A stretch of 62,928 nt of DNA, filler included, from Perkinsus chesapeaki ATCC PRA-425 (lineage: Eukaryota; Protista; Perkinsozoa): NCBI GenBank assembly GCA_013115145.1. It is 14 parts of 14 records of this genome, joined end to end, with 100 filler letters (N's around TTAATTAATTAA, not from the genome) between each part and the next. Parts side by side here need not be neighbours in the genome. Positions count along the whole stretch, not along the records: positions 1 to 16,310 come from JAAPAO010000708.1; 13 more parts are not named here. The stretch is one strand, 5' to 3'. The position numbers were made by a program, and so were the translations under genes. The notes beneath the pieces are model-generated. The model saw only the letters and a program-made list of their open reading frames with translations, did not search any database and had not been told where the DNA came from. Each line of letters starts with the position of its first letter. The stretch's first letter is position 1. Below are positions 587 to 16,094 of the stretch, in pieces.

Positions 587-2055
587 TTGCTGCTAACGGA
601 ACGACGGTACTCACAGCATGTTCAGCATGCCATGTTGCCTCAGGGCCTGAGGCTCAGGCAACTTGCCTGGGTCAAAGTGTTCTACTGTATAACTTCTACA
701 TCATTCTTCATTTCGAAGTGAAGGGTTGTTTGAAACAACTTGTTTCTCTTCCGACATTAATCAGCGTCCTCGCAGCCGAGATAACACGATGTCGTCTCGA
801 AAATGGTGCTGTGTGGAAATTGTTGGGTCATTTCGGACGTTGTAATTTCATCTGGAAATTTTCATGAAAACTGTTTAACAGAAGGAGAACTGTTTTCCCG
901 TTCCGCCGGCAAGCGGCGGAATTCCCGCTTGATAGAGCTGAGCATTTGGTTATCTCAGGATACGAAAACCAGATAGCCTATATATAGGTCGAAAAAGTCG
1001 CTAAAAGACACACTTTGTTTTAAGCATAAAAACAAAAATACAACTTCTCCCGAGAATAAGTCTGGCAAGGAGTAACATAGTATTCTGTAAAAGTTTCCGG
1101 AAATCGATTTTGAAAAACGATCCTAAGTTGGTGTTCAACTAACACAATTTTCAAAGCCGCAAACGATTCCGGAAAGAATTGCAGCAACAATTCTGAGTGC
1201 CGGAATTGAAAATCTCTGAGAGATTTTCTCTCAGAGACGTTAAGGTGGTAGTTTAGCCACTTCTTGCTCACTACAGAAGGGAGTCCCCTCAGCGGACTAG
1301 ACTCTACAGTCACTAGAGTGCTAAAGCGGTAGGTTCAGTCTCTTATTGGTACCGCCATCCCCAAGAGAGTCGCATTTCCTTAATCATTGTTAAATTCCCA
1401 TGGGTTGCTTTCATGTTGAATTTCCATTTTCGACAACCCCAAATCTCGGAGATGATACAACTCTGGTTATATAACTGACCAACTCAAGTTTTGTTCTTTC
1501 AGCCAGAAACGATATGTATTATGCGGGCTCCGTATACTCCCCTTCCAACTCTTTTCTTCCTTCTCCTTCACCATCTACATGTCTTTTCGACTCAAGTCGC
1601 CACTTGTCAACAAATTCCATATCACACTGGACGTTAACAAACTCAATCACGGTGTCGGTCTCAATCTCCAGACGAGCTGCATGATTAGTGGAAAGAATCC
1701 AACAATCGACTTGGGAAGGAGTATAGCTGTCATTACCGAGCTACCGACATACTATAGTATGTCGGTAGCTTGGATTATGGTTTTAGAGCTTGGATTTCCC
1801 CATCTTGCTTGGATTACCACACATAGCTTGGCTTACAGTGGTCAGCCCTCAACACGGAAGAAGCAGTATTGATGAAAAATTGCCAGCCAGACTCGAGTCG
1901 AGTCACCCGACCGAAGTGAGGGACTCTCATTAAGGGCACGGTCAGATCATCTGACTTGCATGGCTGTTGACTCGACAGTACCGATAAAAACGCTCAAAGT
2001 TGCGAAGGAAATAAATAAAACAGCAGACCGTCAAAGGAAAGAATCATCGACGCAC

Positions 2056-4838
2056 TCAGTTCTTCTTGGACATAATGTCCCGATAGTATTTTTTAGGACG
2101 GATACGCTTGGCAGCGAGTCTGCGTTGAACATCTAGACCGACTTTGATAAGCTTGTCATCCTGCCAGTGTGGAGCCATTATCTGATAAGATATTAATGAA
2201 GATGCATCCTAGTTGTTATATAAGTGACTGACCTGAATGCCGAGGGGCATTCCTTCCTTGTTCTGGCCAACTGGAATGGTTATGGATGGAAAGCCAACCA
2301 GATTGGTCGGCCATATAAAGCGTAACATTTCCGAAACTCTTGTCGGATTGAATTCACCTGATGAACAAAAATAACAAACTCATAGTTGATAATAATCTAT
2401 GAGCGTGAGGCCCCAGAGTGGTGTTAAGTACACGGAACGTTAGCTTACCATATTGAAAGACACCCGAGGGGATCTCCGGGGCACCGTAGGCGATAGTCGG
2501 CGTGATAATGAAATCAACACCTTTGAAAACTTCATTCCTAAGCGAATCCGGCTGTACCCCAGCAGACGGCTTATGGGCTCACCATTGTTGGATAGCCCAA
2601 CCACGCAGCTTAGGTATAGCATCGACTACATCCTTTTTCTTAACAATATCTCGACCAAGAGCGAGAGATATCTAACAACACGGGGTGTTCCAAGTTACCG
2701 CAATTGATCGAGTCTAACCTGTGTATTGTACTCGTAGCCATCCAGTGGCTGGTCAGGATGAGTATCGGCGAACTCCGTGGCGATAGCGAAAGCTGAAAGA
2801 GCGCAGCAATCACGGATTGAACCGATACGGATGTCACTTACTATGAGAGAGAGCCTGATCCTGCATATCTTTCATACGAAACTCATGACGATCCCATTGA
2901 TCCTTCATAGCTTCTAGTGCAGTATTGAAGGCCTGAGACGATAAGAATAGACAAACTCGATAGCCGAAGGGACCGTTCATACGGATTGCGCTTCTTCACT
3001 GCTGAACTTCACCCAGTCATCAAAGACGCCAACTTTATATTTGCCTTTAGGAGAGGGAGTTAGGAGAGCATTAAGATGCATCGGTGGCATTGTTTTCTTG
3101 CCAGCGGCTTTTTGGTAGAGACCATCGTAGAACTTCTACGGTAGAAGTGCTGACCTCCTAACAGGTGATGTCTCGCAGCAATCTGAGCTGCTAGTAGACG
3201 TACTTTTGTATTGAACATTCCCAATAACACTCATAACGTGCGCGACATCGGCTACATTAGCAGCGATTGGTCCACAGTGCAGGGTGGTGAAAACTTTTAG
3301 TTCTTCATTGTCATAACGAACCTAGCGGAATCTTTATTGTGAGATCGGGAACGAGATGGTGAACTCACTCTGCCGAAGGTAGGAGCAAGCCCAACAACTC
3401 CAGACCAAACAGAAGGGATACGAATAGAACCACCACCATCAAAGCCAATGAAGAATAGAGCCTGATCAATAATACATTAAAACACTGCTGGGGCTGTCTA
3501 TACCATTCCAGCTGCTGCAGCAGTAGCAGCACCCGAGGAGCTTCCACCAGTGAAGCGGCGGGTGTCAAAGGCATTGAGGGGTCCTTGGTACCAACCTAAA
3601 AATGCGTCAATATAGAGCTTCTGTTAACCGTAAACCACCTACTGTTGTATCCCAGCGGGCTGATGCCTAACTCATGCATCGTTGTAGTTCCGATGAGAAT
3701 AGCGCCAGCATCGAGAAGGGCATCAATAACGGGATCGTTTGTCGTCTAATCACAGAACAAAGTTGCCCAAGCATCCAAGCTGGATGTTGTGAACGATCCA
3801 GCTCACCTTTATCGGCAGAGACTTCGCCATTCTCCCCTTTGGATTAATGTCATCAAGCAGCTTTTGGCCGATAACCTACAGAGAAAATTCTCGGATGTGC
3901 GAGTAACAATGGTCTCACATTCATTTCATCTTTAACACCAAATGGTATGCCATCAAGCATGGATTTTGGTTTGCCTTGTCTAAACCTCTCGGCGCTAGCT
4001 TTGGCCAAGCGATTGATCTCTTTAACACTATAAAGCTCTTTGAAAGCTTTTAGAGTTGGATTAAAGTCTCTTACGGCTTGAAGAACATTCTAATCAGAAC
4101 ACCATAGCTATTTGAGAAGGCTTATCTGTGTACATCAATGATGTCCACTGGATTGGCTTCGCCCTTCATATAGGCCGTGTGCAAATCCTCAATGGACCTG
4201 TACGGACTGCCAATGCCCGAACCAAAGTACCGAGATACATTCTGAGCGAGGGGATAACGACCCAACATAATTTAATCGAATATTCCGTTTTACCTTCTTG
4301 AGTTGGGCTTCTTCTTTACTATAGTATTCCTGCGCCTTCTCATAATCTCGATTGCCTGAGCGGGCGAAGTCAGGCCAAATGATAAGTCTACCCGAACTGA
4401 CTCAGTGGTATCATGGGGAACTTGACGGGAGCGATTTTTGGGCTGACCTCCTTGGCGACCGTTGGAATACATTTTATCTGGCAAGAGACTCTCACGGTTC
4501 AGAAGCAAACCTACGCCATTCATATTGAGCATCAAGTTACGTAGTGCCGAACCTGTGGTCTTCGATGTTGCTAGTCCGGCGTAACTCTGAAAGTGAACCA
4601 CAGTCAGGAACACAAATAAAGATTGCTCTTAATTTACCTTAAGTTGCCATCCGGACATGCTAGGGGCGGATATTGGTCTCATGTTAAAAGTAGTGACGTC
4701 AAGTGGATTGCATGTGTAACCACCACCAGCTTGACCCTGAAGGTCAAACAAAAAGCGATTTCACGTGATAGCCTGTTGGCTTCGTACCTCTTGCATTAAG
4801 AACGGCGCTATGATCCAGATAAGACGAGAAGAGCACAT
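2056..4838 (-). CDS. FAAH: Amidase-signature enzyme, plant-type fatty acid amide hydrolase homolog, multi-exon
   Basis: Exons read by hand: [95 protein letters not shown], ending [10 protein letters not shown] (stop 2056-2058). Short GT-AG introns. N-terminal [17 protein letters not shown] resembles the plant FAAH N-terminus. Start at 4838 ([15 protein letters not shown]) is tentative. Confidence 0.85.
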
Positions 4839-6173
4839 TACGAAGCAACCTGAGACTAGAATCTAAGGACGTGGATCACAATTCGATCATCTTAACTGAT
4901 AAATTGTATCCAGAGACTAGGGAAAGTGTGACCTCTTCTAAGCGCCTTGGCCTCCACTGCACACACGTGCAAGTAAATCGAAGGAACTCTGGTCTTTTGG
5001 GAGGTTTTCTGAGGGTAAAAGCCTCAGTTGAGCGGATAGCGACTAGTCTGGACGAATTTAATCATTGAGTGGTGACGCTAGACCAAGACGTAACCATAGG
5101 ACTCATAAGCGGGTAATTTCGATTCAGAGTTCGAGGAGCGCGCATTGTGTTGACCGGGGATGAGCGCCCATAAACAGCAGGTGAAGCTCCGGCGACTATG
5201 CCTGACACATGCAGCATATTTGAGCGTGTATGGCTATCTTGCTCTGCCTACCTATGCACTTGGATCTCACGGCTTTCTCGAAGTTGCTTGAGTGATACCG
5301 TAGTGCCGCACTACTAGTGCGTAGTCTACTCGTCTGATGCAGGCCAAGTAGCGCGCAGATTCTGGGCCCCAGAACAGCGCCGGTGCCAGGTTGGCACTGC
5401 CACTGGCAGTTGTGCCAGCACAAGGTGCGATGCCCAATACCTTACAAGTAATTGAATATGCAATACTAGGTTTAGAAAAGTAGGAAGCTGAGAGCCGTCA
5501 GTAATGGCTACGCTTTTGGAAGGGCTTTTATTCGCTCCGACAGCAAGACGAGTTTTTCATAACTCCCGATTCACAAGCCTCACGAGTATCGTAAGCCCCG
5601 GAGCGTCATGAGCGGAGCACCGCACGGCAAGTCCGGTACCTCAAGAGAGCTTGGGCATGCCAGGACTTAACTGATAAATCAGGATACGGACCACACGGCC
5701 CAGTCATTTGATAAGTTACTTGTACTTACGGATATGATACGTCCTATCATATCCGTAATTAAAATTACTTCTTGTGCTGGTGAGCCTTGGATATGATCTT
5801 CCATGTGTCTGTGGGTCGCAGTGATCGGTTTCTAATCGTTGTGAATCTGCAGACATGGTCTAGAGGCTATCAAGTATATTTTCATGATGGCTAGGTAAAA
5901 ATGCCGTACCATTACCTCGCCAGGCCTTAGGCCATGCCCTAAACTGAAACTGACGAGTTCTGATGATTCAGAAGTTCTGAGTCAGAACTCGTACTCCCTT
6001 CTGGACTCCAAGTTGGGCAGTCCAACTACGACGTCATGTTCCCAGCAGCCATCGAGTTCCTTCAAGCTAACCATGCAACAACTAATGACCATGACAGAGT
6101 ATTCGGACACCTGTCGACTATCAACTTGATGGCAACTAGAGGGCGTTAGGTCGTGTAACATGACTCATGGACC

Positions 6174-6548
6174 ATGAGTCGTGGTTCAGTTCTTGAGTAC
6201 CTGGACGACTTGGAAACCGCCATATCTATGGGGAACTCCGTTCTTTACATTCTTCATTGTTCATGCCAGGCAAGTCCTCCACGAGGTCTCACTGATCATC
6301 TGCGTAAGGTCTCCAATCAGCAACAGTTTAGCATCCGTGATGTTTCTGAGCTTGCTATGGCTCTTCAATATTGGCAAGGTCTTCTCTGCAAGAAGCTAAC
6401 CCTCTTGCTTCTACATTTTTTCCGCCTACCACGACTCCCAACAACTGCACTGTATAGCTCACGCAATTGCTGTCTATCGCATAACTTTCGTACCGCCGTA
6501 TTACTAGCTTTCTTTACTCTCAAAAGAAAGCTATACTCGTATACGTGA
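6174..6548 (+). pseudogene. Possible retrotransposon gag remnant
   Basis: SVLEYLDDLETAI...PRGLTDHLR resembles a gag capsid segment. No pol nearby. Confidence 0.25.
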
Positions 6549-7337
6549 TATTCTGCTCGTTACTCAGTGAGTAATACTCACTCTCTCTACTGCCCTACTC
6601 GTTAACTATGAGCCCAATCTATAATTGTTGTGTTACCATTACGCTATCCCTAACGAGATAGTGCACAACCCTACTCTCAACGCAGACTAGGCGTCGCGGA
6701 GTCTCCAACTTCATATATCTTGAGGATATCTGGAAGTTCCATCAGTCCGACTAGACTTCAATTAATGATTGACGAATCTATCATTGCACTGAAGAGCGCG
6801 CCGAGCCTTCTCGGCTCCGGGCACGGCTCCTAAGGAGTCGCTCCTTATGCCTCTCTGACAAAGACATTGTTAGTTGTTCACTGTTACTTTGATACATCTT
6901 CTATTGGGTTTTTTTGTAAGAACGGTTGCGTTTTTCGGGTGTTTAACTTTCATAAACTTCATTGTCGTGTACTTGCACTTCGTACCCCAAGTGCGACCCG
7001 TTATAGTCATACACTAAATCATCATACACCGTATGATCATACACTGTAACTTCATACACTTGGTCTTAATTCTACCATAGTGCTAGAGTTGCTAGTAGCC
7101 GTTCCCTGAGTTAACGCAAGGTTTAAATATATAAAAGCTTTAATACAACTTTACAGTATTTAGCTAGAGCTAGTTAAAGTCGCGTCGCGCTAGGGAGACA
7201 TCGCTTGAAACACAAAAGTGGCAAGGCGACACAATTCACACAACACATAGTTCATACACTGCACGTTCGTACACTTCAACTTCTTTCACCGAAGTGGTAT
7301 ACACTTTCATTTCATCCACCGACTGATTTCGTACACT

Positions 7338-7426
7338 CCTCGATGGTCCAGCTCAAATCCGTCTCAAAAAACGTTGGGAGGTGAGCAACGGAGACGAGCG
7401 TCAACCAACTTGAGTGAGTGACTCCC
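7338..7426. repeat. Split direct repeat B2 (partner B1 at 7749-7837)
   Basis: cctcgatggtccagctc...gagtgagtgactccc occurs at both positions. Confidence 0.95.
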
Positions 7427-7522
7427 GGAGACGAGCGTCAACCAACTTGGGAGACGAGCGTCAACCAACTTGAGTGAGTGACAACGGAGACGAGCGTCAA
7501 CCAACTTGAGTGAGTGACTCCC
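7390..7522. repeat. Tandem amplification of a 23-nt unit GGAGACGAGCGTCAACCAACTTG (4 copies)
   Basis: Copies start at 7390, 7427, 7450 and 7486. A fifth copy lies in B1 at 7801. Confidence 0.9.
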
Positions 7523-7572
7523 CCTTTACCGAGGGAGTGGAGGGTGGGACAATTTGAAGGTATACTAAGCCC

Positions 7573-7748
7573 GTCGGCACGACCAGGCTTGATACCAAGA
7601 GATCTCAGACAGAGACTTCTAACATTCTGTCGATTCTAACAACCGTACGCATACGCACCGTGACATGGATCTGACGTGGCGCTCGGCGAGCGCTGCTTCC
7701 CCATCAGAGTGTATGATAGCACAAGCGTTGTCGTGCAGCGCATACACT
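7573..7748. repeat. Split direct repeat A2 of the YR retrotransposon
   Basis: Matches 13127-13302 except ccgtgAcatgg vs ccgtgTcatgg. Confidence 0.95.
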
Positions 7749-8244
7749 CCTCGATGGTCCAGCTCAAATCCGTCTCAAAAAACGTTGGGAGGTGAGCAAC
7801 GGAGACGAGCGTCAACCAACTTGAGTGAGTGACTCCCATCGTGTGACACTCAGAATCAAGTTGTTGGAAGAGAGCTCTCATTCCAAAAAGATTCGAGTCA
7901 CCAAAAGGAGTTGCTCACCTTGCTCCCACAAAACAATCAAGTTGTGTCAAACCATATAAATTGTTTCATCCATTTCAGTTATACCTCGGTTACTCACCGT
8001 ACTACGGCGCTACCAAGCCTAACTTTCTAGTTCGACGCACTAGTAGTGTGGCACTACCGAACCGAACTTCCCCATGTCAAGGAGAAGAGGTGAGGTAGAT
8101 GATACTCGTAGAATATGGCAAGGTGGTATAAGATGTCGAAGACATATGGTCCAGAACCTGTGACTAACGCAACCGCTTACATAGGGAAACTGTAACTGAG
8201 AGAAGTGCCCGCAGTAGATCGTGATCAACCAATAGTTGACTCAG

Positions 8245-9360
8245 CTAATGCCGCTTGCTCTGTAGACATTTACGAGCACATCGATTTAAGTAATGAAGCT
8301 TGGTAGTGGAAGATTTCCAGCCACCGAATTTGTCAATTGTAGAGCCTGGGACATTAGCGAGGACCAGATCAGTTGTGAAACCCCGGCGGAAAGCATGAGA
8401 ACTAGCATGACCCGAGATATCGGGTAGAGCTTTGGAACAATGTTTGAGAAGCCGATTGAAGGTAGACAACGAGATTGATTCGAGTTGATGGTCAACAACT
8501 ATCCGTGCAGCCTCTACAGGGCACAAGTCGCTTCCCGTAGAGGAGCATGTACATGACCGATGCAGGTGGGAAGGAACTGAACTATTCTTTCGGCGATGTA
8601 GTGTCAAGTACACAGAAGACCCCGAGAATAGAATGTCCCGATTACTAACATCCAAGAGTTCAGATGGTATCCGTAGGCCAAAGCTGTAACCAAGAACGCA
8701 CAAGGCACTGAAGAGGATTAAGTTGTTAGATCGAGCTATGTCAACGATTCCACGAAGGTGACGAAAGGATAGAAAAACCTTCGGATTACGACGTTGATTC
8801 AGCACCTTTAATGCGCCTTTGACCATCAGGTTGGTTAAAGGATCATCAAAGTTGATACGGAGAGATAATATTTCATGTATTTTCTTTATAACTGAGACAT
8901 AGCGGACATGCGCCTGCTTGGTGGTAATGAATGATCGAATAGCATTAGACGACACCGGGAAAATCGTGGTTCGCGGAAAGTGTGACCAATGCCAAAGTAG
9001 GAAGCATTTGAGTGCCGATCGATAAGACTTCCAAGTCGTAGGAGACAAGTGGGCCAGTAAGAGGGAGTGCTCTTGGAAGGGTAAAAACGGCAAATCTTCA
9101 GCTAACAAAGCCGCCTTGAAGTCGGGATGAGTGGTAAGGATCTGCCAACGTATCTCTGAAGAACGAGATAGACCACGTGGGGCCCACGCCCAAAGGTCTC
9201 GAACAGTGAAGACAGATTCCAAGCGAAGTGCATCCAAGAGCTTTGTAGGGTTCTTGATTATTCCCAGAATCAAGGGAGCCACCAGAAGTGGGGGTGAACG
9301 GTGAGACATCTGATGTAGTCTGCTTAAAGTACTGAATAACTGAAACCACCAGTAGTTCAC
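8245..9360 (-). CDS. Tyrosine recombinase of the retrotransposon (probable ATG at 9309)
   Basis: Catalytic set GLRIPSE (R), RRKNS (K), HAFRRG (HxxR), GGW (W), LHY (Y). Confidence 0.92.
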   Translation of the reverse strand: MNYWWFQLFSTLSRLHQMSHRSPPLLVAPLILGIIKNPTKLLDALRLESVFTVRDLWAWAPRGLSRSSEIRWQILTTHPDFKAALLAEDLPFLPFQEHSLLLAHLSPTTWKSYRSALKCFLLWHWSHFPRTTIFPVSSNAIRSFITTKQAHVRYVSVIKKIHEILSLRINFDDPLTNLMVKGALKVLNQRRNPKVFLSFRHLRGIVDIARSNNLILFSALCVLGYSFGLRIPSELLDVSNRDILFSGSSVYLTLHRRKNSSVPSHLHRSCTCSSTGSDLCPVEAARIVVDHQLESISLSTFNRLLKHCSKALPDISGHASSHAFRRGFTTDLVLANVPGSTIDKFGGWKSSTTKLHYLNRCARKCLQSKRH

Positions 9361-9423
9361 AAAATATGAAGAGAAAAAAAACCATTAATCTCAGTTGGAA
9401 AAGAATATTTCAGAAGTCATTAA

Positions 9424-11601
9424 CTATAGTCCCGTAACACTTTTTACCGATTGCAGTCCAAGCCCGCTATCGACAGCCCAGGCGGGTACAATACCCGGCA
9501 ACTTTACAGCACCCCGAAGCCACGGTGTGTTATAATCACCTCGAGACGGAGCGTCGGCGGGATTGGCTGAAGAAGAGACATGAGCAATGTAAAACTGAAG
9601 TTGATGCAATGAAGCTACGCGTAACCAGAGAGAATGGACAGCCAGACCAAGAGCATCAGATGTGCTCGATCCCTTAAGCAAGGCATGTTCAGCAACCCTG
9701 CTATCGGAGAATATCAAGAGTGGTCTGTTTGCAGCCATAGTGTGGAAAGTCTCGAGTGCTATACCTATCCCAATCAGTTCTAAAACGTTGATGTGACCAG
9801 AAGAGGAAGTTTGAACTACAGAGAATTGGGCTGGAAGGTTAAGTTGGGGAGGGGCATAGACTGCTATCTTGCCAGAGGAAGTAGCAGCGTCCGTGTAACA
9901 AATGTACGGACTGCGGGTATTCAACAGCCTTGCGGACAAATCGTTACAAGTTTGTGACGATGAGAAAATGTCCAATAGAAGTTTCACTGCAGAACGCACG
10001 TTCTCGTCGGAAACCTCTATACCCAAAGCTTTGCGTATTAGGACGCGAGCGGGACCCCGACCTGCTCGGCCGTAGAGAGCCTCACACGCAAAGGACACTT
10101 TGCCCGCCAGTTTGGAATCAACCTGCGACTCACGAAGAAGCACAGATGTCAATGCCGACCGCAAGCTCTTTCGTCTGTCATCCGTCAAGGCGACTCGGAC
10201 TTTTCCTTCAACCAGATCGACTAAAAGTCCCAACAAGACGACAGATGAGGATGGTGGGACGTCTTTTTCACGCTTTATCTCTGCTCCAATGAGGTGATTG
10301 ATGAATAAGAAAAAATCATGTGCACCATTACCAGAGAGAGTGTGTTCGACAGCAAAAAAATCATCCATATAGGCTAATTGATTGATCCAGCCAAGGGAGC
10401 GACTGAAATGTGTAATCATCTCTGATAATCTCAAATAGTTAGAAACCGATGCTACCGCCCCAAAGGGGCATCTTAGGGGCACCACCACCTTGGGCTCTGA
10501 TGTCGCAGTTAAGAACATCCCACAAGCGCGCCAAGCATCTTCGCATTTTATAGGTAGCTGCCTATACGCCGACTTATGGTCGGATCGAAATATAGTCTGT
10601 GGTCCCCTGTGCTGGAGTTTCCTGGAAACTTCTGCCACGTGTAACAGTCTAGGGAACTGTACCTTGTGGTATATAGTGGCAGTGTCGTTGAGTTTAACTC
10701 CTGAGGTCCTGTAAGAGTAGTTAGATATAAGACGAACTTTATCGTGCTGCTGTACCGCAAAGAGGGGAGATATGAAATTGACGGCGGCCGGGATGTCTTC
10801 CAAGGAAAAGGGGCCGATGGCTCGAAGTAGGCTAACCTCGTTGTGAACATCTTCAACGATGGCTTCGTTCATCAGTGGATTGTCGAAGTTGTTAATGAGA
10901 TACGAGTGTAAGGCCTTAAGAGCCGGAGTTGTGAGATGGAGATCTTGTGGAGAGTGACGGGCAATCTTCGGCTTAGGGGATACAGGAAATAAACCACCAT
11001 CTGGGATGACCCCCGTTAATGGGAATCCTAAAGCCAAGTCGAAGACGATGTCTTCGTCACGAAACCTAGTCACCTTTACCAATTCGATGATGCGATCGAG
11101 TTTCCAGTTTGAAAGAGTCGGCCTTATAAATCTAGATTTGTAGGCAATTTCTTGGCCACACTTTGTAGTTCCTAACCAGGAATGTAACTTGAGTTTGTTG
11201 TTTGCTCTCAACCAGTTGATATCTTCTGGAGGGAGTTCGTTTTGCACCGCTACCGTGGCCTGCAACATCGATGGCAGCTCTACTCTAGGGGGTTCGATAA
11301 ATTGTTGTTGTAGAGCCCACTCGATGTGTTCTGCGGGTGAAGAGACATCCGAGGCCCGATCTTCTGCGTGTATAATGTTGTACACACTTTGGCGGGCCGA
11401 CGGGTAGCCATATGTAATATTAGGTCCTGCTTCTAGTCGAGGGCGGATTACCAGGATGCCTTGGAAAGCCACAACTTCAACCAAATCAGCCAAACGAGCG
11501 TGGATTAAAGCTTGCTTGGCCTTGCGCAGAATCTCATTCATCTTGCTGCGCCTTCCACCCCGACGTCTTTTTGGGCTGGGAATCTGGTTGTTGGAGGCCA
11601 T
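9424..11601 (-). CDS. Reverse transcriptase-RNase H, DIRS-order type
   Basis: RT motifs DHKSAYRQL, CPFGAVAS, AYMDDFF, LLG. RNase H motifs YTDA, INVLEL, FSDS, NPADAPSR. Confidence 0.95.
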   Translation of the reverse strand: MASNNQIPSPKRRRGGRRSKMNEILRKAKQALIHARLADLVEVVAFQGILVIRPRLEAGPNITYGYPSARQSVYNIIHAEDRASDVSSPAEHIEWALQQQFIEPPRVELPSMLQATVAVQNELPPEDINWLRANNKLKLHSWLGTTKCGQEIAYKSRFIRPTLSNWKLDRIIELVKVTRFRDEDIVFDLALGFPLTGVIPDGGLFPVSPKPKIARHSPQDLHLTTPALKALHSYLINNFDNPLMNEAIVEDVHNEVSLLRAIGPFSLEDIPAAVNFISPLFAVQQHDKVRLISNYSYRTSGVKLNDTATIYHKVQFPRLLHVAEVSRKLQHRGPQTIFRSDHKSAYRQLPIKCEDAWRACGMFLTATSEPKVVVPLRCPFGAVASVSNYLRLSEMITHFSRSLGWINQLAYMDDFFAVEHTLSGNGAHDFFLFINHLIGAEIKREKDVPPSSSVVLLGLLVDLVEGKVRVALTDDRRKSLRSALTSVLLRESQVDSKLAGKVSFACEALYGRAGRGPARVLIRKALGIEVSDENVRSAVKLLLDIFSSSQTCNDLSARLLNTRSPYICYTDAATSSGKIAVYAPPQLNLPAQFSVVQTSSSGHINVLELIGIGIALETFHTMAANRPLLIFSDSRVAEHALLKGSSTSDALGLAVHSLWLRVASLHQLQFYIAHVSSSANPADAPSRGDYNTPWLRGAVKLPGIVPAWAVDSGLGLQSVKSVTGL

Positions 11602-11797
11602 TATGTCGTAGTGTTAAGAAAATTTTTTCTGACTTAAAGCCGACTGCTCGGAATCCTGTGGAACTCAAAACTGATGGTTCGATGGGTTGATAATTATCTG
11701 ATGATCTACTAAGTGATGATCTAATAAGTGATGTCATCACTTGATCATTGATCAATTTGTTGAGCTAAGTTAGGTGTCGTAGGCGGCCATGGAGAAG

Positions 11798-12823
11798 CTA
11801 TTCCTTCTCTTCATTGGCCTTCTCATTCTTTTCCTCGGACTGCCCTTTCTTTTTTCCGGAAGAATTCCACCCGTACCAACTGTTCCAGTTGCTATAGTGA
11901 TTCCCAGCGGAAGAAGAGTTCCAACGATCATTTCTTCCAAATCTCTTTGGGAAGGTTGACGACCCTCCTACTTTGGTAGGCGGGAGTGAGAAGCCTTCGA
12001 ACCGGCTAAGTGCAGAGTTGAGGGTGTAGTTGACGGGCTGTGGTTTAGATAGGTCACAGTTGAACACTTGGTTAGACTGTACCAGTCCGAGTGCTAGAGT
12101 CGTCATCTTCTCAAGTTCATGACGGGCATTTTGGGTGCCGTTAGTTCCGAAAGACTTGTCGGCCACGTTGCCAGCTATGCTGATAGCCGTCGCACCAGTA
12201 ATGACCCCTGCCTGAGCCAATCTTGCCCCGAAACCTATGGCCGCCATGTTGACTGACGCTAGCGGGAAAACCTCAGTTGTGCCATCAATCGTGACACCTT
12301 TCACGCGGAGCCAAGAGCTAGGAATGTAAGCGTACCATGCTTGATCGAGATAGGACTCGAGGGTACACCAGCGGTGGTGTAAGGGGGCGAGAAGGTGACC
12401 GGGCATAGGGTTATCAGGAGTGGTGGCTGTTTGCCTCTGGTACAGGGGCTGCTTATGATGGTCTTGAGGCTGGCGGACTTGTGGATCGGCAAGGAAATCA
12501 CGGATCTGTGAATCAACGTCTGATAGTGATATATCACTTCTGCGGTTGGGCTTGGCAGACGGAGTCAGAGGAAGGAGGGGCGGAGGTTGCTCCTGTCTGC
12601 CTCGAGGGGAGAGTCCGGACATGTCCTGCAAGGGGGGTAGTTCAGAATCGTCCGAGGAAATAGGAGTAGGGGGCTGCTTTCTTATAGGCTTGGTAGTAGG
12701 AGGCTTCTTAGGTGCCGGTTTCTTCGCCACGGTCTTCTTTCTCATGGGCTTGTTGACCAAGGGTCCGGCGGGCAGAGCTGCCTTGCGTTTCAGAGTAGGA
12801 GATTTAGTTGTCTTGGTAGGCAT
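11798..12823 (-). CDS. Gag-like ORF1 of the YR retrotransposon
   Basis: 341-aa ORF in the first position of the element, with a basic Pro/Lys-rich N-terminus. No CCHC seen; assignment is positional. Confidence 0.75.
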   Translation of the reverse strand: MPTKTTKSPTLKRKAALPAGPLVNKPMRKKTVAKKPAPKKPPTTKPIRKQPPTPISSDDSELPPLQDMSGLSPRGRQEQPPPLLPLTPSAKPNRRSDISLSDVDSQIRDFLADPQVRQPQDHHKQPLYQRQTATTPDNPMPGHLLAPLHHRWCTLESYLDQAWYAYIPSSWLRVKGVTIDGTTEVFPLASVNMAAIGFGARLAQAGVITGATAISIAGNVADKSFGTNGTQNARHELEKMTTLALGLVQSNQVFNCDLSKPQPVNYTLNSALSRFEGFSLPPTKVGGSSTFPKRFGRNDRWNSSSAGNHYSNWNSWYGWNSSGKKKGQSEEKNEKANEEKE

Positions 12824-13126
12824 TGATTAAACCCAGGGGGGAAAAGGAGGGGACTGAGAGGGGGGGCAATCTCCCAAAGTTTCTGAGTGAAGCGAAGAGG
12901 GGGGAAAGGGGGGGCTGAGGCGTGAGCCTCGTAGGCCGAATGGATTGGCGAAATAGCACCGTCAAGCGGCCTAGCCGCATCAGGCAGTGCTACGAACACC
13001 GATCCATGGATGAGGAGGGGGGGGCAAGGTTGCCCCAGGAGCTCAGTGTAAGAGCTGGCCACGGCACATGGCAAGTAATACATGGAAGTATTCCTGAAGT
13101 ATCGTGTGAGCCCAGGCAAGGGGCTG

Positions 13127-13302
13127 GTCGGCACGACCAGGCTTGATACCAAGAGATCTCAGACAGAGACTTCTAACATTCTGTCGATTCTAACAACCGT
13201 ACGCATACGCACCGTGTCATGGATCTGACGTGGCGCTCGGCGAGCGCTGCTTCCCCATCAGAGTGTATGATAGCACAAGCGTTGTCGTGCAGCGCATACA
13301 CT
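13127..13302. repeat. Split direct repeat A1
   Basis: See A2. Confidence 0.95.
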
Positions 13303-13367
13303 AACAAAAATTCCGAAGACTCATTCAAATTTTACATACTGAATGGTAGGATCGAACCTGATATCTT

Positions 13368-14338
13368 GGGTGTATAACGATTGGTACACATAAATTACGT
13401 ACACATGAAACTCGTACACAGAATTTTTGACTTTCGACTGGTACACCAAATTCCCGTACACTCAAATCTCTGATCGACAAAATGTGATACACCAAAAATA
13501 GGTTCAGGGCCAAGTAGTACACAAAAATTCCGTTCATATGAGTGTCGTACACTAAGATTTGGTTCAGTTTGATTTCGTACTCCTCGAACTCGTACACCCG
13601 ATGACTCGTACATTTTTTCGTACGTTTTTTTCAGTTCAGTAGGGAGATTACTAATTTGTCAATGCAAAGGCTGAGCGTTCAGTCCCCAGAGGCGACATAA
13701 CTGGCAAACTTTGTCTGTACGGCGGAGCAATTAGCACTTCTGGGGAGATCAATATTGAGTCAATGCGACATTGAATTTTGTAGTCGGATTGCTCTAGTGG
13801 TATATTATACCATATGTCCATGTCAGATAGCACTTATTAAGTGCTATCTGACATGGACAAGGTTCTAGGTTCGGATCTAACCCGGGGTATTTTCAGTTCA
13901 TGGGAGTGTGAGGATCTGAAAGCCTGGGGTGAGTAAGCTTGGAGTTGGAGCGCCCGCGGAGCCGGGGCGAAAAATTTTAAAAAGCAGTTGATGCGGCCGC
14001 ATCAACTGGCTTTTAAAAGTTTTGGAGTGTACGAGACGAAAGTATACGAGATATGCGTGTACGGAAAAAGTGTGGATTGAGATTTTGGTGTATGAAATGG
14101 GGGTGAACGGAATGAAAGTGTACGAACCTTTAGTGAACTGAATACAAGTGTACCGAGCTTATGGAAACGAGATAATAGTGAACGTACTACTTTTGGTGGT
14201 CGAACTGCCGATGATCTGAATAGGAGCGAACGAGCTGACTGTGTACGTGTTTCAAGCAATCGAGTTGAGTATGAACGTGATTTATGGAGATTGAACATTA
14301 AGTGTACGTGTTTTTTGTGTACCAATCGTTAACATCCC
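13368..14338. mobile_element. Non-autonomous TIR element (MITE-like, 971 bp) with subterminal TCRTACAC arrays
   Basis: TIRs GGGTGTATAACGATTGGTACAC and GTGTACCAATCGTTAACATCCC. 8-bp TSD GATATCTT at 13360-13367 and 14339-14346. CGTACAC motifs on + in the left arm and GTGTACG in the right arm. Confidence 0.9.
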
Positions 14339-14403
14339 GATATCTTAAGTTCGTAAGATGCAAGCGTAGCGCTCTACCTACTCAACTATAGTTAGGTATA
14401 ATA

Positions 14404-15864: not shown

Positions 15865-16094
15865 CAGCAACATTCGTGTGTATGAACTTTGTGTGTATGA
15901 AAATTGTGTGTATGACGATAAAGTGTATGAACCTTATGTGTATCCCTTTGTCGTGTATCGTATAACTGTGTATAACCTTGTGGTGTATGAATCGGAGGTG
16001 TACGACAAAAAAGTGTATGAATTTTTTGTGTACGAAGAAAAGTGTATGGTACAAACCTGAACGAAGATTAGGTACATGAAACAGAAACACCCCC
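15865..16094. repeat. Right arm of a related TIR element: about 12 GTGTAYGA motifs at 15-bp period, ending in ...ACACCCCC
   Basis: Directly visible 15-nt periodic motif with variable spacers. Matching left end not identified. Confidence 0.7.

Follow-up and report, generated by a model that had tools for sequence, protein, structure and literature searches.

A young Ngaro-type tyrosine recombinase retrotransposon at a TACACT word in the arm of a Mutator-like transposon of Perkinsus chesapeaki

Perkinsus chesapeaki is a perkinsozoan parasite of clams. The window examined here, i.e., the whole stretch of DNA that was analysed, comprises 62,928 nucleotides of strain ATCC PRA-425 (NCBI GenBank assembly GCA_013115145.1) and is composed of parts of 14 records joined end to end. 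Its first part harbors a tyrosine recombinase (YR) retrotransposon of the Ngaro type, which is inserted in the arm of a DNA transposon best called a Mutator-like element (MULE). The genome searched was the P. chesapeaki assembly of 41.7 Mb in 3544 contigs, in which the retrotransposon and its flanks lie on contig C3180. The features of the retrotransposon, with its open reading frames (ORFs) for the YR and for a reverse transcriptase (RT) with RNase H (RH), are as follows:

7338..13302, minus strand: intact Ngaro-type YR retrotransposon, 5965 bp including one TACACT core, with split direct repeats and three intact ORFs
7332..7337, plus strand: left TACACT core where the element's 3' end lies, in the context ...tttcgTACACT followed by cctcg
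7338..7522, plus strand: repeat A1, its initial 89 bp identical to A2, with a tandem expansion at 7386-7522
7573..7748, plus strand: repeat B1, holding the inverted 8-mers AGTGTATG (7707-7714) and CATACACT (7741-7748)
7743..7748, plus strand: TACACT at the internal B1/A2 junction gcaTACACTcctcg, the presumed circle-junction template
7749..7837, plus strand: repeat A2, delimited by repeat search
8245..9360, minus strand: tyrosine recombinase ORF, 371 aa (PF00589, E = 2e-7, 31.4 bits)
9424..11601, minus strand: RT/RNase H ORF, 725 aa, very divergent, with motifs read by eye
11798..12823, minus strand: ORF1, 341 aa, gag-like on position alone
13127..13302, plus strand: repeat B2, 99% identical to B1
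13297..13302, plus strand: right TACACT core at the 5' end of the element, in the context gcaTACACT followed by aacaa

Read in the orientation of the element, these features give the layout A1-[gag, RT/RH, YR]-B1A2-B2, with the ORFs on the minus strand between the repeats. The repeat search recovered two pairs of direct repeats, namely A, with 95-bp copies at 7332-7426 and 7743-7837 (100% identity), and B, with 176-bp copies at 7573-7748 and 13127-13302 (99% identity). The A and B repeats abut at 7743-7748, where they overlap by exactly 6 bp, TACACT; at this hexamer the left flank ceases to agree with the internal junction on one side, and the right flank ceases to do so on the other. Inverted repeats of at least 20 bp are absent within 6800-13800, and no methyltransferase domain was found in the RT ORF, in which the RNase H ends ~25 aa before the terminus with no further domain. 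This layout identifies the segment 7338-13302 as a YR retrotransposon of the Ngaro type (PMC8547959, PMC3266345), and its near-identical repeats together with the intact ORFs indicate a recent insertion. The inverted 8-mers near the end of the B repeat, AGTGTATG and CATACACT, lie 26 bp apart and recur at 13261-13268 and 13295-13302. The second includes the shared hexamer, and the first takes the form AGCGTATG in most relatives; the two may constitute a candidate recombinase-binding pair. A tandem expansion of a 37/23-bp unit (GGAGACGAGCGTCAACCAACTTG...) occupies 7386-7522 in A1 and is missing from A2, where the unit is present once.

The YR ORF scores above the curated PF00589 cut-off of 27.1 bits, and its translation shows the segments GLRIPSE, HAFRRG, and WKSSTTKLHY (W..(7)..HY), in keeping with the R...HxxR...Y catalytic signature. 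The 725-aa ORF carries the RT motifs SDHKSAYRQLPI (pattern D..AYRQLP), CPFG, and YMDD, followed by the RNase H motifs YTDAA, E, DS, and ADAPSR. Sequence searches of Pfam and PDB with this ORF recovered no match, and its language-model look-alikes (Atlas) carry RVT_1 or RT_RNaseH. A homology search with the RT returned its own annotated protein and one 25%-identical sequence, nothing more, and an exact-protein look-up in public assemblies returned no record. The database gene model for the locus (FOL47_009789 [Perkinsus chesapeaki], ‘hypothetical protein’, 1082 aa) fuses the RT and YR ORFs of the element. ORF1 had no family match in Pfam and PDB sequence searches.

The empty site, built from the host flanks only, reads TTTCG-TACACT-AACAAAAA or, in a longer form, ...CCACCGACTGATTTCG-TACACT-AACAAAAATTCCGAAG... 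Paralogous host arms on contigs C570 (89% over 121 bp) and C1928 align ungapped across it and contain, at the homologous place, TAAACT in the former and a single TACACT in the latter. Hence, the insertion was precise: apart from the shared hexamer nothing was duplicated, and a single TACACT was present in the target. The third TACACT, at the internal B1/A2 junction, is as expected of a crossover core but not of a target-site duplication (TSD). An earlier note on this DNA, made from the sequence by eye, had quoted the left, internal, and right TACACT junctions, all of which are present. It had described a YR retrotransposon with split direct repeats and a crossover core, an anatomy that the repeats and ORFs confirm, the shared hexamer being of the crossover type and not a TSD, and had reconstructed the empty site across which the two paralogs now align. 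It had further reported that the circle junction matches a variant unit of the array at eight of nine positions. This holds for other units of the array but not for the site used, which agrees at 7/9 positions, viz., the 6-bp core and a C at -2. The unit used is a CG variant, and four CATACACT units of the same arm that match the circle junction better were left unused.

The arm that received the retrotransposon, and the elements next to it, including a miniature inverted-repeat transposable element (MITE) with its terminal inverted repeat (TIR), comprise:

6937..7081, plus strand: left end of the MULE-like host, with the TIR GGGTGTTTAAC and then the first CATACAC block at 15-bp spacing
7082..7251, no strand assigned: separate 164-bp repeat inserted in the arm, with CATAGT at 7076-7081 and 7246-7251 (TSD-like)
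7252..7337, plus strand: inner block of the arm array, with the YR element in its last unit
13303..13367, plus strand: host arm continuing to the right of the YR element, contiguous with 7337 in the paralogs
13368..14338, plus strand: MITE of the same superfamily, with a ~35-bp imperfect TIR GGGTGTATAACGATTGGTACAC and inverted CGTACAC arrays in both arms
15878..16092, minus strand: inverted CATACAC/CGTACAC array with a GGGTGTTT end, which may be the host element's right arm

The motif CRTACAC, whose enrichment was judged against its expected count and 200 shuffles of the window, occurs 33 times as against 3.1 expected, a number reached by none of the shuffles (0/200). The occurrences cluster at 15-bp spacing, in plus orientation at 7008-7336 and 13398-13597 and in minus orientation at 14027-14308 and 15878-16048. 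The host arm has ~10 such units after the TIR at 6937, with the YR element in the innermost one, and arms of this kind contain several perfect cores within 300 bp. The paralog on C1928 likewise has GGGTGT followed by the same array. The ends at 6937 and ~16092 may belong to different copies. The same arm also took the 164-bp repeat, with relatives of 74-76% identity on C3, C3320, and C3252 and an empty site with a single CATAGT on C570, as well as the MITE; at least four transposable elements (TEs) are nested here. The MITE is flanked by a perfect 8-bp TSD (GATATCTT at 13360-13367 and 14339-14346) and belongs to a family with at least 40 genomic copies of 77-96% identity; the copy on C2842 has a TSD matching at 7/8 positions (TCTCCGAT/CCTCCGAT), and a third copy examined showed no TSD match. 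The interior of the window copy contains a long perfect palindrome (tatgtccatgtcagatagcacttaATTAagtgctatctgacatggaca-like) at 13812-13858.

Genome-wide, adjacent CRTACAC pairs number 288 versus 7 for a control pattern. On contig C29, a GGGGTGTT end and a ~280-bp array (5171-5449) are followed by an open frame that scores above the cut-off for the MULE transposase domain PF10551 (E = 2e-7), the contig stopping inside the gene. Given the GGGTGT TIR, the 8-bp TSDs, and this transposase domain beside an array, the CRTACAC-array family is best called Mutator-like, as judged from these sequence features. A hAT identity, considered on account of the 8-bp TSD, was rejected: the genome yields 11 matches to the hAT dimerisation domain, and the six contigs examined contain neither arrays nor matching TIRs. 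The CRTACAC arrays, TIRs, and TSDs together uphold the contention of the earlier note that the insertion lies in one of the subterminal repeats of a genuine DNA-transposon family with TIRs. The repeats are putative transposase-binding sites, as suggested by their 15-bp period, their place in the arms, and their inverted orientation. The same C29 contig contains within 1622-7516 another YR retroelement, with a 742-aa RT-like ORF and a YR ORF (PF00589, 6e-7) that is broken ~5 codons past the catalytic Tyr by the CRTACAC-array MULE, a nesting in the reverse sense to that of the window locus.

A related family of retroelements, with the internal junction cacaTACACTcctYg, termini ~80% identical and a YR ~45-49% identical to those of the window element, is represented in the genome by a single copy with an internal deletion, along with several solo A-B units and isolated ends. 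Together, these provide 12 insertion loci with 18 outer junctions (7 on the A side and 11 on the B side). Each locus was scored for a CRTACAC array within 300 bp of the insertion, and none has one (0/12), as compared with 5 and 4 motifs in the flanks of the window element. The A-side (3' end) hexamer of the relatives is nearly always the TACACT of the element, whereas the B-side (5' end) hexamer is variable and looks target-derived, the observed B-end versions being TACACT, TTCACA, AACACT, AACACG, TACACC, TAATAC, TAAAAC, AACCCA, TATGAT, CACAAT, and AATATA. The B-side hexamers nevertheless agree with TACACT at 62% of positions, where 25% would be expected (p = 3e-10), a match that is clear but loose. 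Mismatches to TACACT amount to 4/42 on the A side and 25/66 on the B side (Fisher p = 0.0015). The base just upstream of the A-side hexamer is a purine in all eight cases (8/8, p = 0.005); the TC upstream of the core is not conserved in the relatives, in which positions -2 and -3 vary. One solo A-B unit of this family (C356, 3300-4087) is embedded in a satellite whose unit resembles AAAGGGATACACTACACTATATACTATAC and in which GGGATACACT occurs, and thus provides a second example of an insertion at a TACACT word belonging to a tandem repeat.

The background frequency of the target word was estimated by two routes. The genome contains 10,713 copies of RTACACT versus 10,021 of the reversed control pattern, an excess that attributes no more than ~6.5% of the RTACACT sites to arrays. 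The adjacent-pair count, which was likewise set against its control pattern, gives ~3% when scaled by the ratio of motifs to pairs in the window. With ~3-6.5% of the sites in arrays, a single array insertion would be a 1-in-15 to 1-in-30 event (approximately) and, having been spotted post hoc, is weak evidence for targeting.

The element is single-copy in the assembly, where its sole 99-100% matches are to the window itself, and fragmentary YR elements are additionally numerous on short repeat contigs of the genome. The source run has a contig depth of ~125 inside the element versus ~150-159 in the flank. A second sample, comprising four runs from a 2022 study under the same organism label, contains pieces of the element at 100% identity and a ~91% variant at about three-fold higher contig depth; one or more old insertions of the related family are also shared. 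In the region corresponding to 8075-8300 (the 3' region of the YR gene) this sample has two versions, one identical to the window and the other deviating by 20 differences over 226 bp; the source run lacks this divergent form. The unique flank of the window element is not present in the second-sample runs. The loose ends available there extend over only 30 nt and are mostly mixed. Three right-junction (B-end) flanks contain no CRTACAC within 30 nt, a weak result given their mixed consensus, and one clean flank, when searched for an empty site in the present assembly, had no match. The 37/23-bp unit of A1 was also found elsewhere in this sample with unrelated flanks (loose ends at 7389 and 7424). 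The second-sample data fit recent mobility; as evidence, they are neither strong nor independent.

We propose that a young Ngaro-type element most probably integrated here without a TSD, by recombination between its B/A junction and a genomic TACACT word that happened to be the innermost unit in the subterminal array of a non-autonomous MULE. Transcription would proceed from the 13302 side toward the 7338 side, and reverse transcription would restore the junction (...GCA-TACACT-CCTCG...) via the internal B1/A2 copy. A circular intermediate would follow, with a crossover by the YR joining the junction to a short, degenerate R-TACACT-like word (a purine, then W-A-C-A-C-like). The asymmetry between the hexamers of the two ends suggests that the strands are exchanged at the hexamer's B-proximal edge. 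The exchange itself may need only ~3 bp (purine, W, A), in agreement with the trinucleotide model (PMC3266345, PMC7192593, PMC9210276), with the remainder of the hexamer serving as a flanking preference. MULE arms would then be struck in proportion to their content of the word and the relaxed selection on them, without dedicated recognition of the arm repeats. Given that the 12 related insertions use similar words outside arrays, the event looks like ordinary short-homology integration, and special targeting of the arm repeats is unsupported.

The earlier note had gone further, inferring that the element is sequence-specific for the putative transposase-binding repeats and uses the abundant non-genic MITE arms as safe harbors. 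On this view, the YR or ORF1 of the lineage would have evolved to recognize TCR-TACACT units. The insertion does lie in an array unit with a perfect core, which random choice among RTACACT sites would produce in only the ~3-6.5% of cases computed above. Furthermore, the B repeat bears CATACACT twice, inverted, and YR retroelements that prefer other mobile elements are known (PMC8547959, PMC5006619). Against such recognition, the window insertion is a sample of one (n = 1), and no same-core relative (0/12) lies in an array, insertions outside arrays having been named beforehand as the refuting outcome. The TC of the postulated unit is not conserved upstream of the core, the continuous identity of the used site with the circle junction goes no further than the 6-bp core, the CG variant was used despite four better CATACACT units, and the three right-junction flanks of the second sample, with the weakness already noted, lack the motif. 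The proposed specificity, along with the role of the arms as safe landing sites, is thus not upheld and is, in our assessment, improbable. A variant of this idea has the lineage using an unusually long core (6-7 bp, R-TACACT) that coincides with the MULE subterminal repeat, the arms being preferred as harmless landing pads, while the hexamer asymmetry would separately mark the position of strand exchange in the integration of YR retroelements. This too we regard as unlikely; if true, it would describe a retroelement parasitising the (putative) binding-site arrays of a DNA transposon.

At the other extreme, integration could be essentially random with respect to sequence, with the location reflecting mere survival in dead TE DNA and the terminal TACACT being either a coincidence or a 6-bp duplication. 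The nesting of at least four TEs at the locus and the many fragmentary YR elements on short repeat contigs are in line with retention, and survival in dead DNA would indeed raise the odds of finding such an insertion. However, the further TACACT between B1 and A2 points to a crossover core and not to a TSD, and the resemblance of the relatives' B-side hexamers to TACACT indicates that sequence matters. Hence, retention as the sole explanation appears highly improbable. Certain observations also weigh against our preferred reading of ordinary integration at a short shared word. The perfect 6/6 match of the core in an array has p ~0.03-0.065 under the model of any RTACACT, which might betray some real preference, and the solo unit within the C356 satellite hints that repeated cores attract insertions. 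Moreover, the YR proteins of the relatives are only ~45-49% identical to that of the window element, and their target behavior may therefore differ. Finally, the circular intermediate and the position of the crossover are themselves part of the model rather than observations, and DIRS-1 cDNA is mostly linear and single-stranded, with its internal complementary region (ICR) being required (PMC7192593). In this regard, the circle and crossover pathway, which the earlier note took as established, is a model derived by bioinformatics, and tests of it have so far been partial (PMC7192593).

The locus as it stands does not show a new targeting strategy. It does offer a young intact element, an exact empty site, a 6-bp core, 18 related junctions, and an asymmetry between the two ends. 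This material could guide a recombination assay, and the 18 junctions reveal how loose the match to the target can be. In addition, it records for Perkinsus both Ngaro-type elements and a MULE/MITE family whose subterminal repeats are periodic. To our knowledge, YR retrotransposons are the least understood order of retroelements, and their integration step has never been reconstituted.

Among the known systems, the YR model posits TSD-free integration via a 3-bp core common to the circle junction and the target (PMC3266345, PMC7192593, PMC9210276). DIRS-1 of Dictyostelium prefers repeats, namely its own copies (PMC5006619, PMC7192593). The window element resembles DIRS-1 and DIRS1-like elements in a YR-type, TSD-free integration thought to use a short shared sequence. 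It differs in having direct split repeats, whereas inverted terminal repeats, an internal complementary region, and a methyltransferase domain characterize DIRS1-like elements. The lack of this domain and of inverted terminal repeats sets it apart from DIRS1-like and PAT-like elements, and, unlike DIRS-1, it shows no self-insertion. The host family resembles MULEs in its GGG-starting TIRs, its 8-bp TSDs, and the MULE transposase domain (PF10551) encoded by the C29 relative; unlike MULEs, it combines a short TIR with long, 15-bp-periodic C(A/G)TACAC arrays that recall the subterminal sites of hAT and CACTA elements, albeit with binding being putative. In Perkinsus marinus, DIRS-like sequences have been listed (PMC3266345) and Merlin remnants reported (PMC8101967); our literature search found no account from Perkinsus of either Ngaro-type elements or this MULE family. 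The earlier note knew of no described YR retroelement that targets the subterminal repeats of another transposon; a precedent for YR retroelements that prefer other mobile elements is provided both by DIRS-1 and by the Ngaro elements of Cafeteria burkhardae (PMC8547959). In the latter organism, EMALE virophages contain 91% of the type 1 copies, in some cases within TIRs, and endogenous virophages, TIRs included, are targets of types 1 and 2a (PMC8547959). The window element shares with the Cafeteria Ngaros the A1-[gag, RT/RH, YR]-B1A2B2 organization, a size of ~6 kb, the lack of a methyltransferase, the occurrence of solo A-B units, and nesting in a mobile element. In contrast to them, it resides in a perkinsozoan host, has an RT too divergent for Pfam and a 6-bp core, is present as one copy and hence demonstrates no preference, and is inserted in a MULE/MITE arm rather than a virophage.

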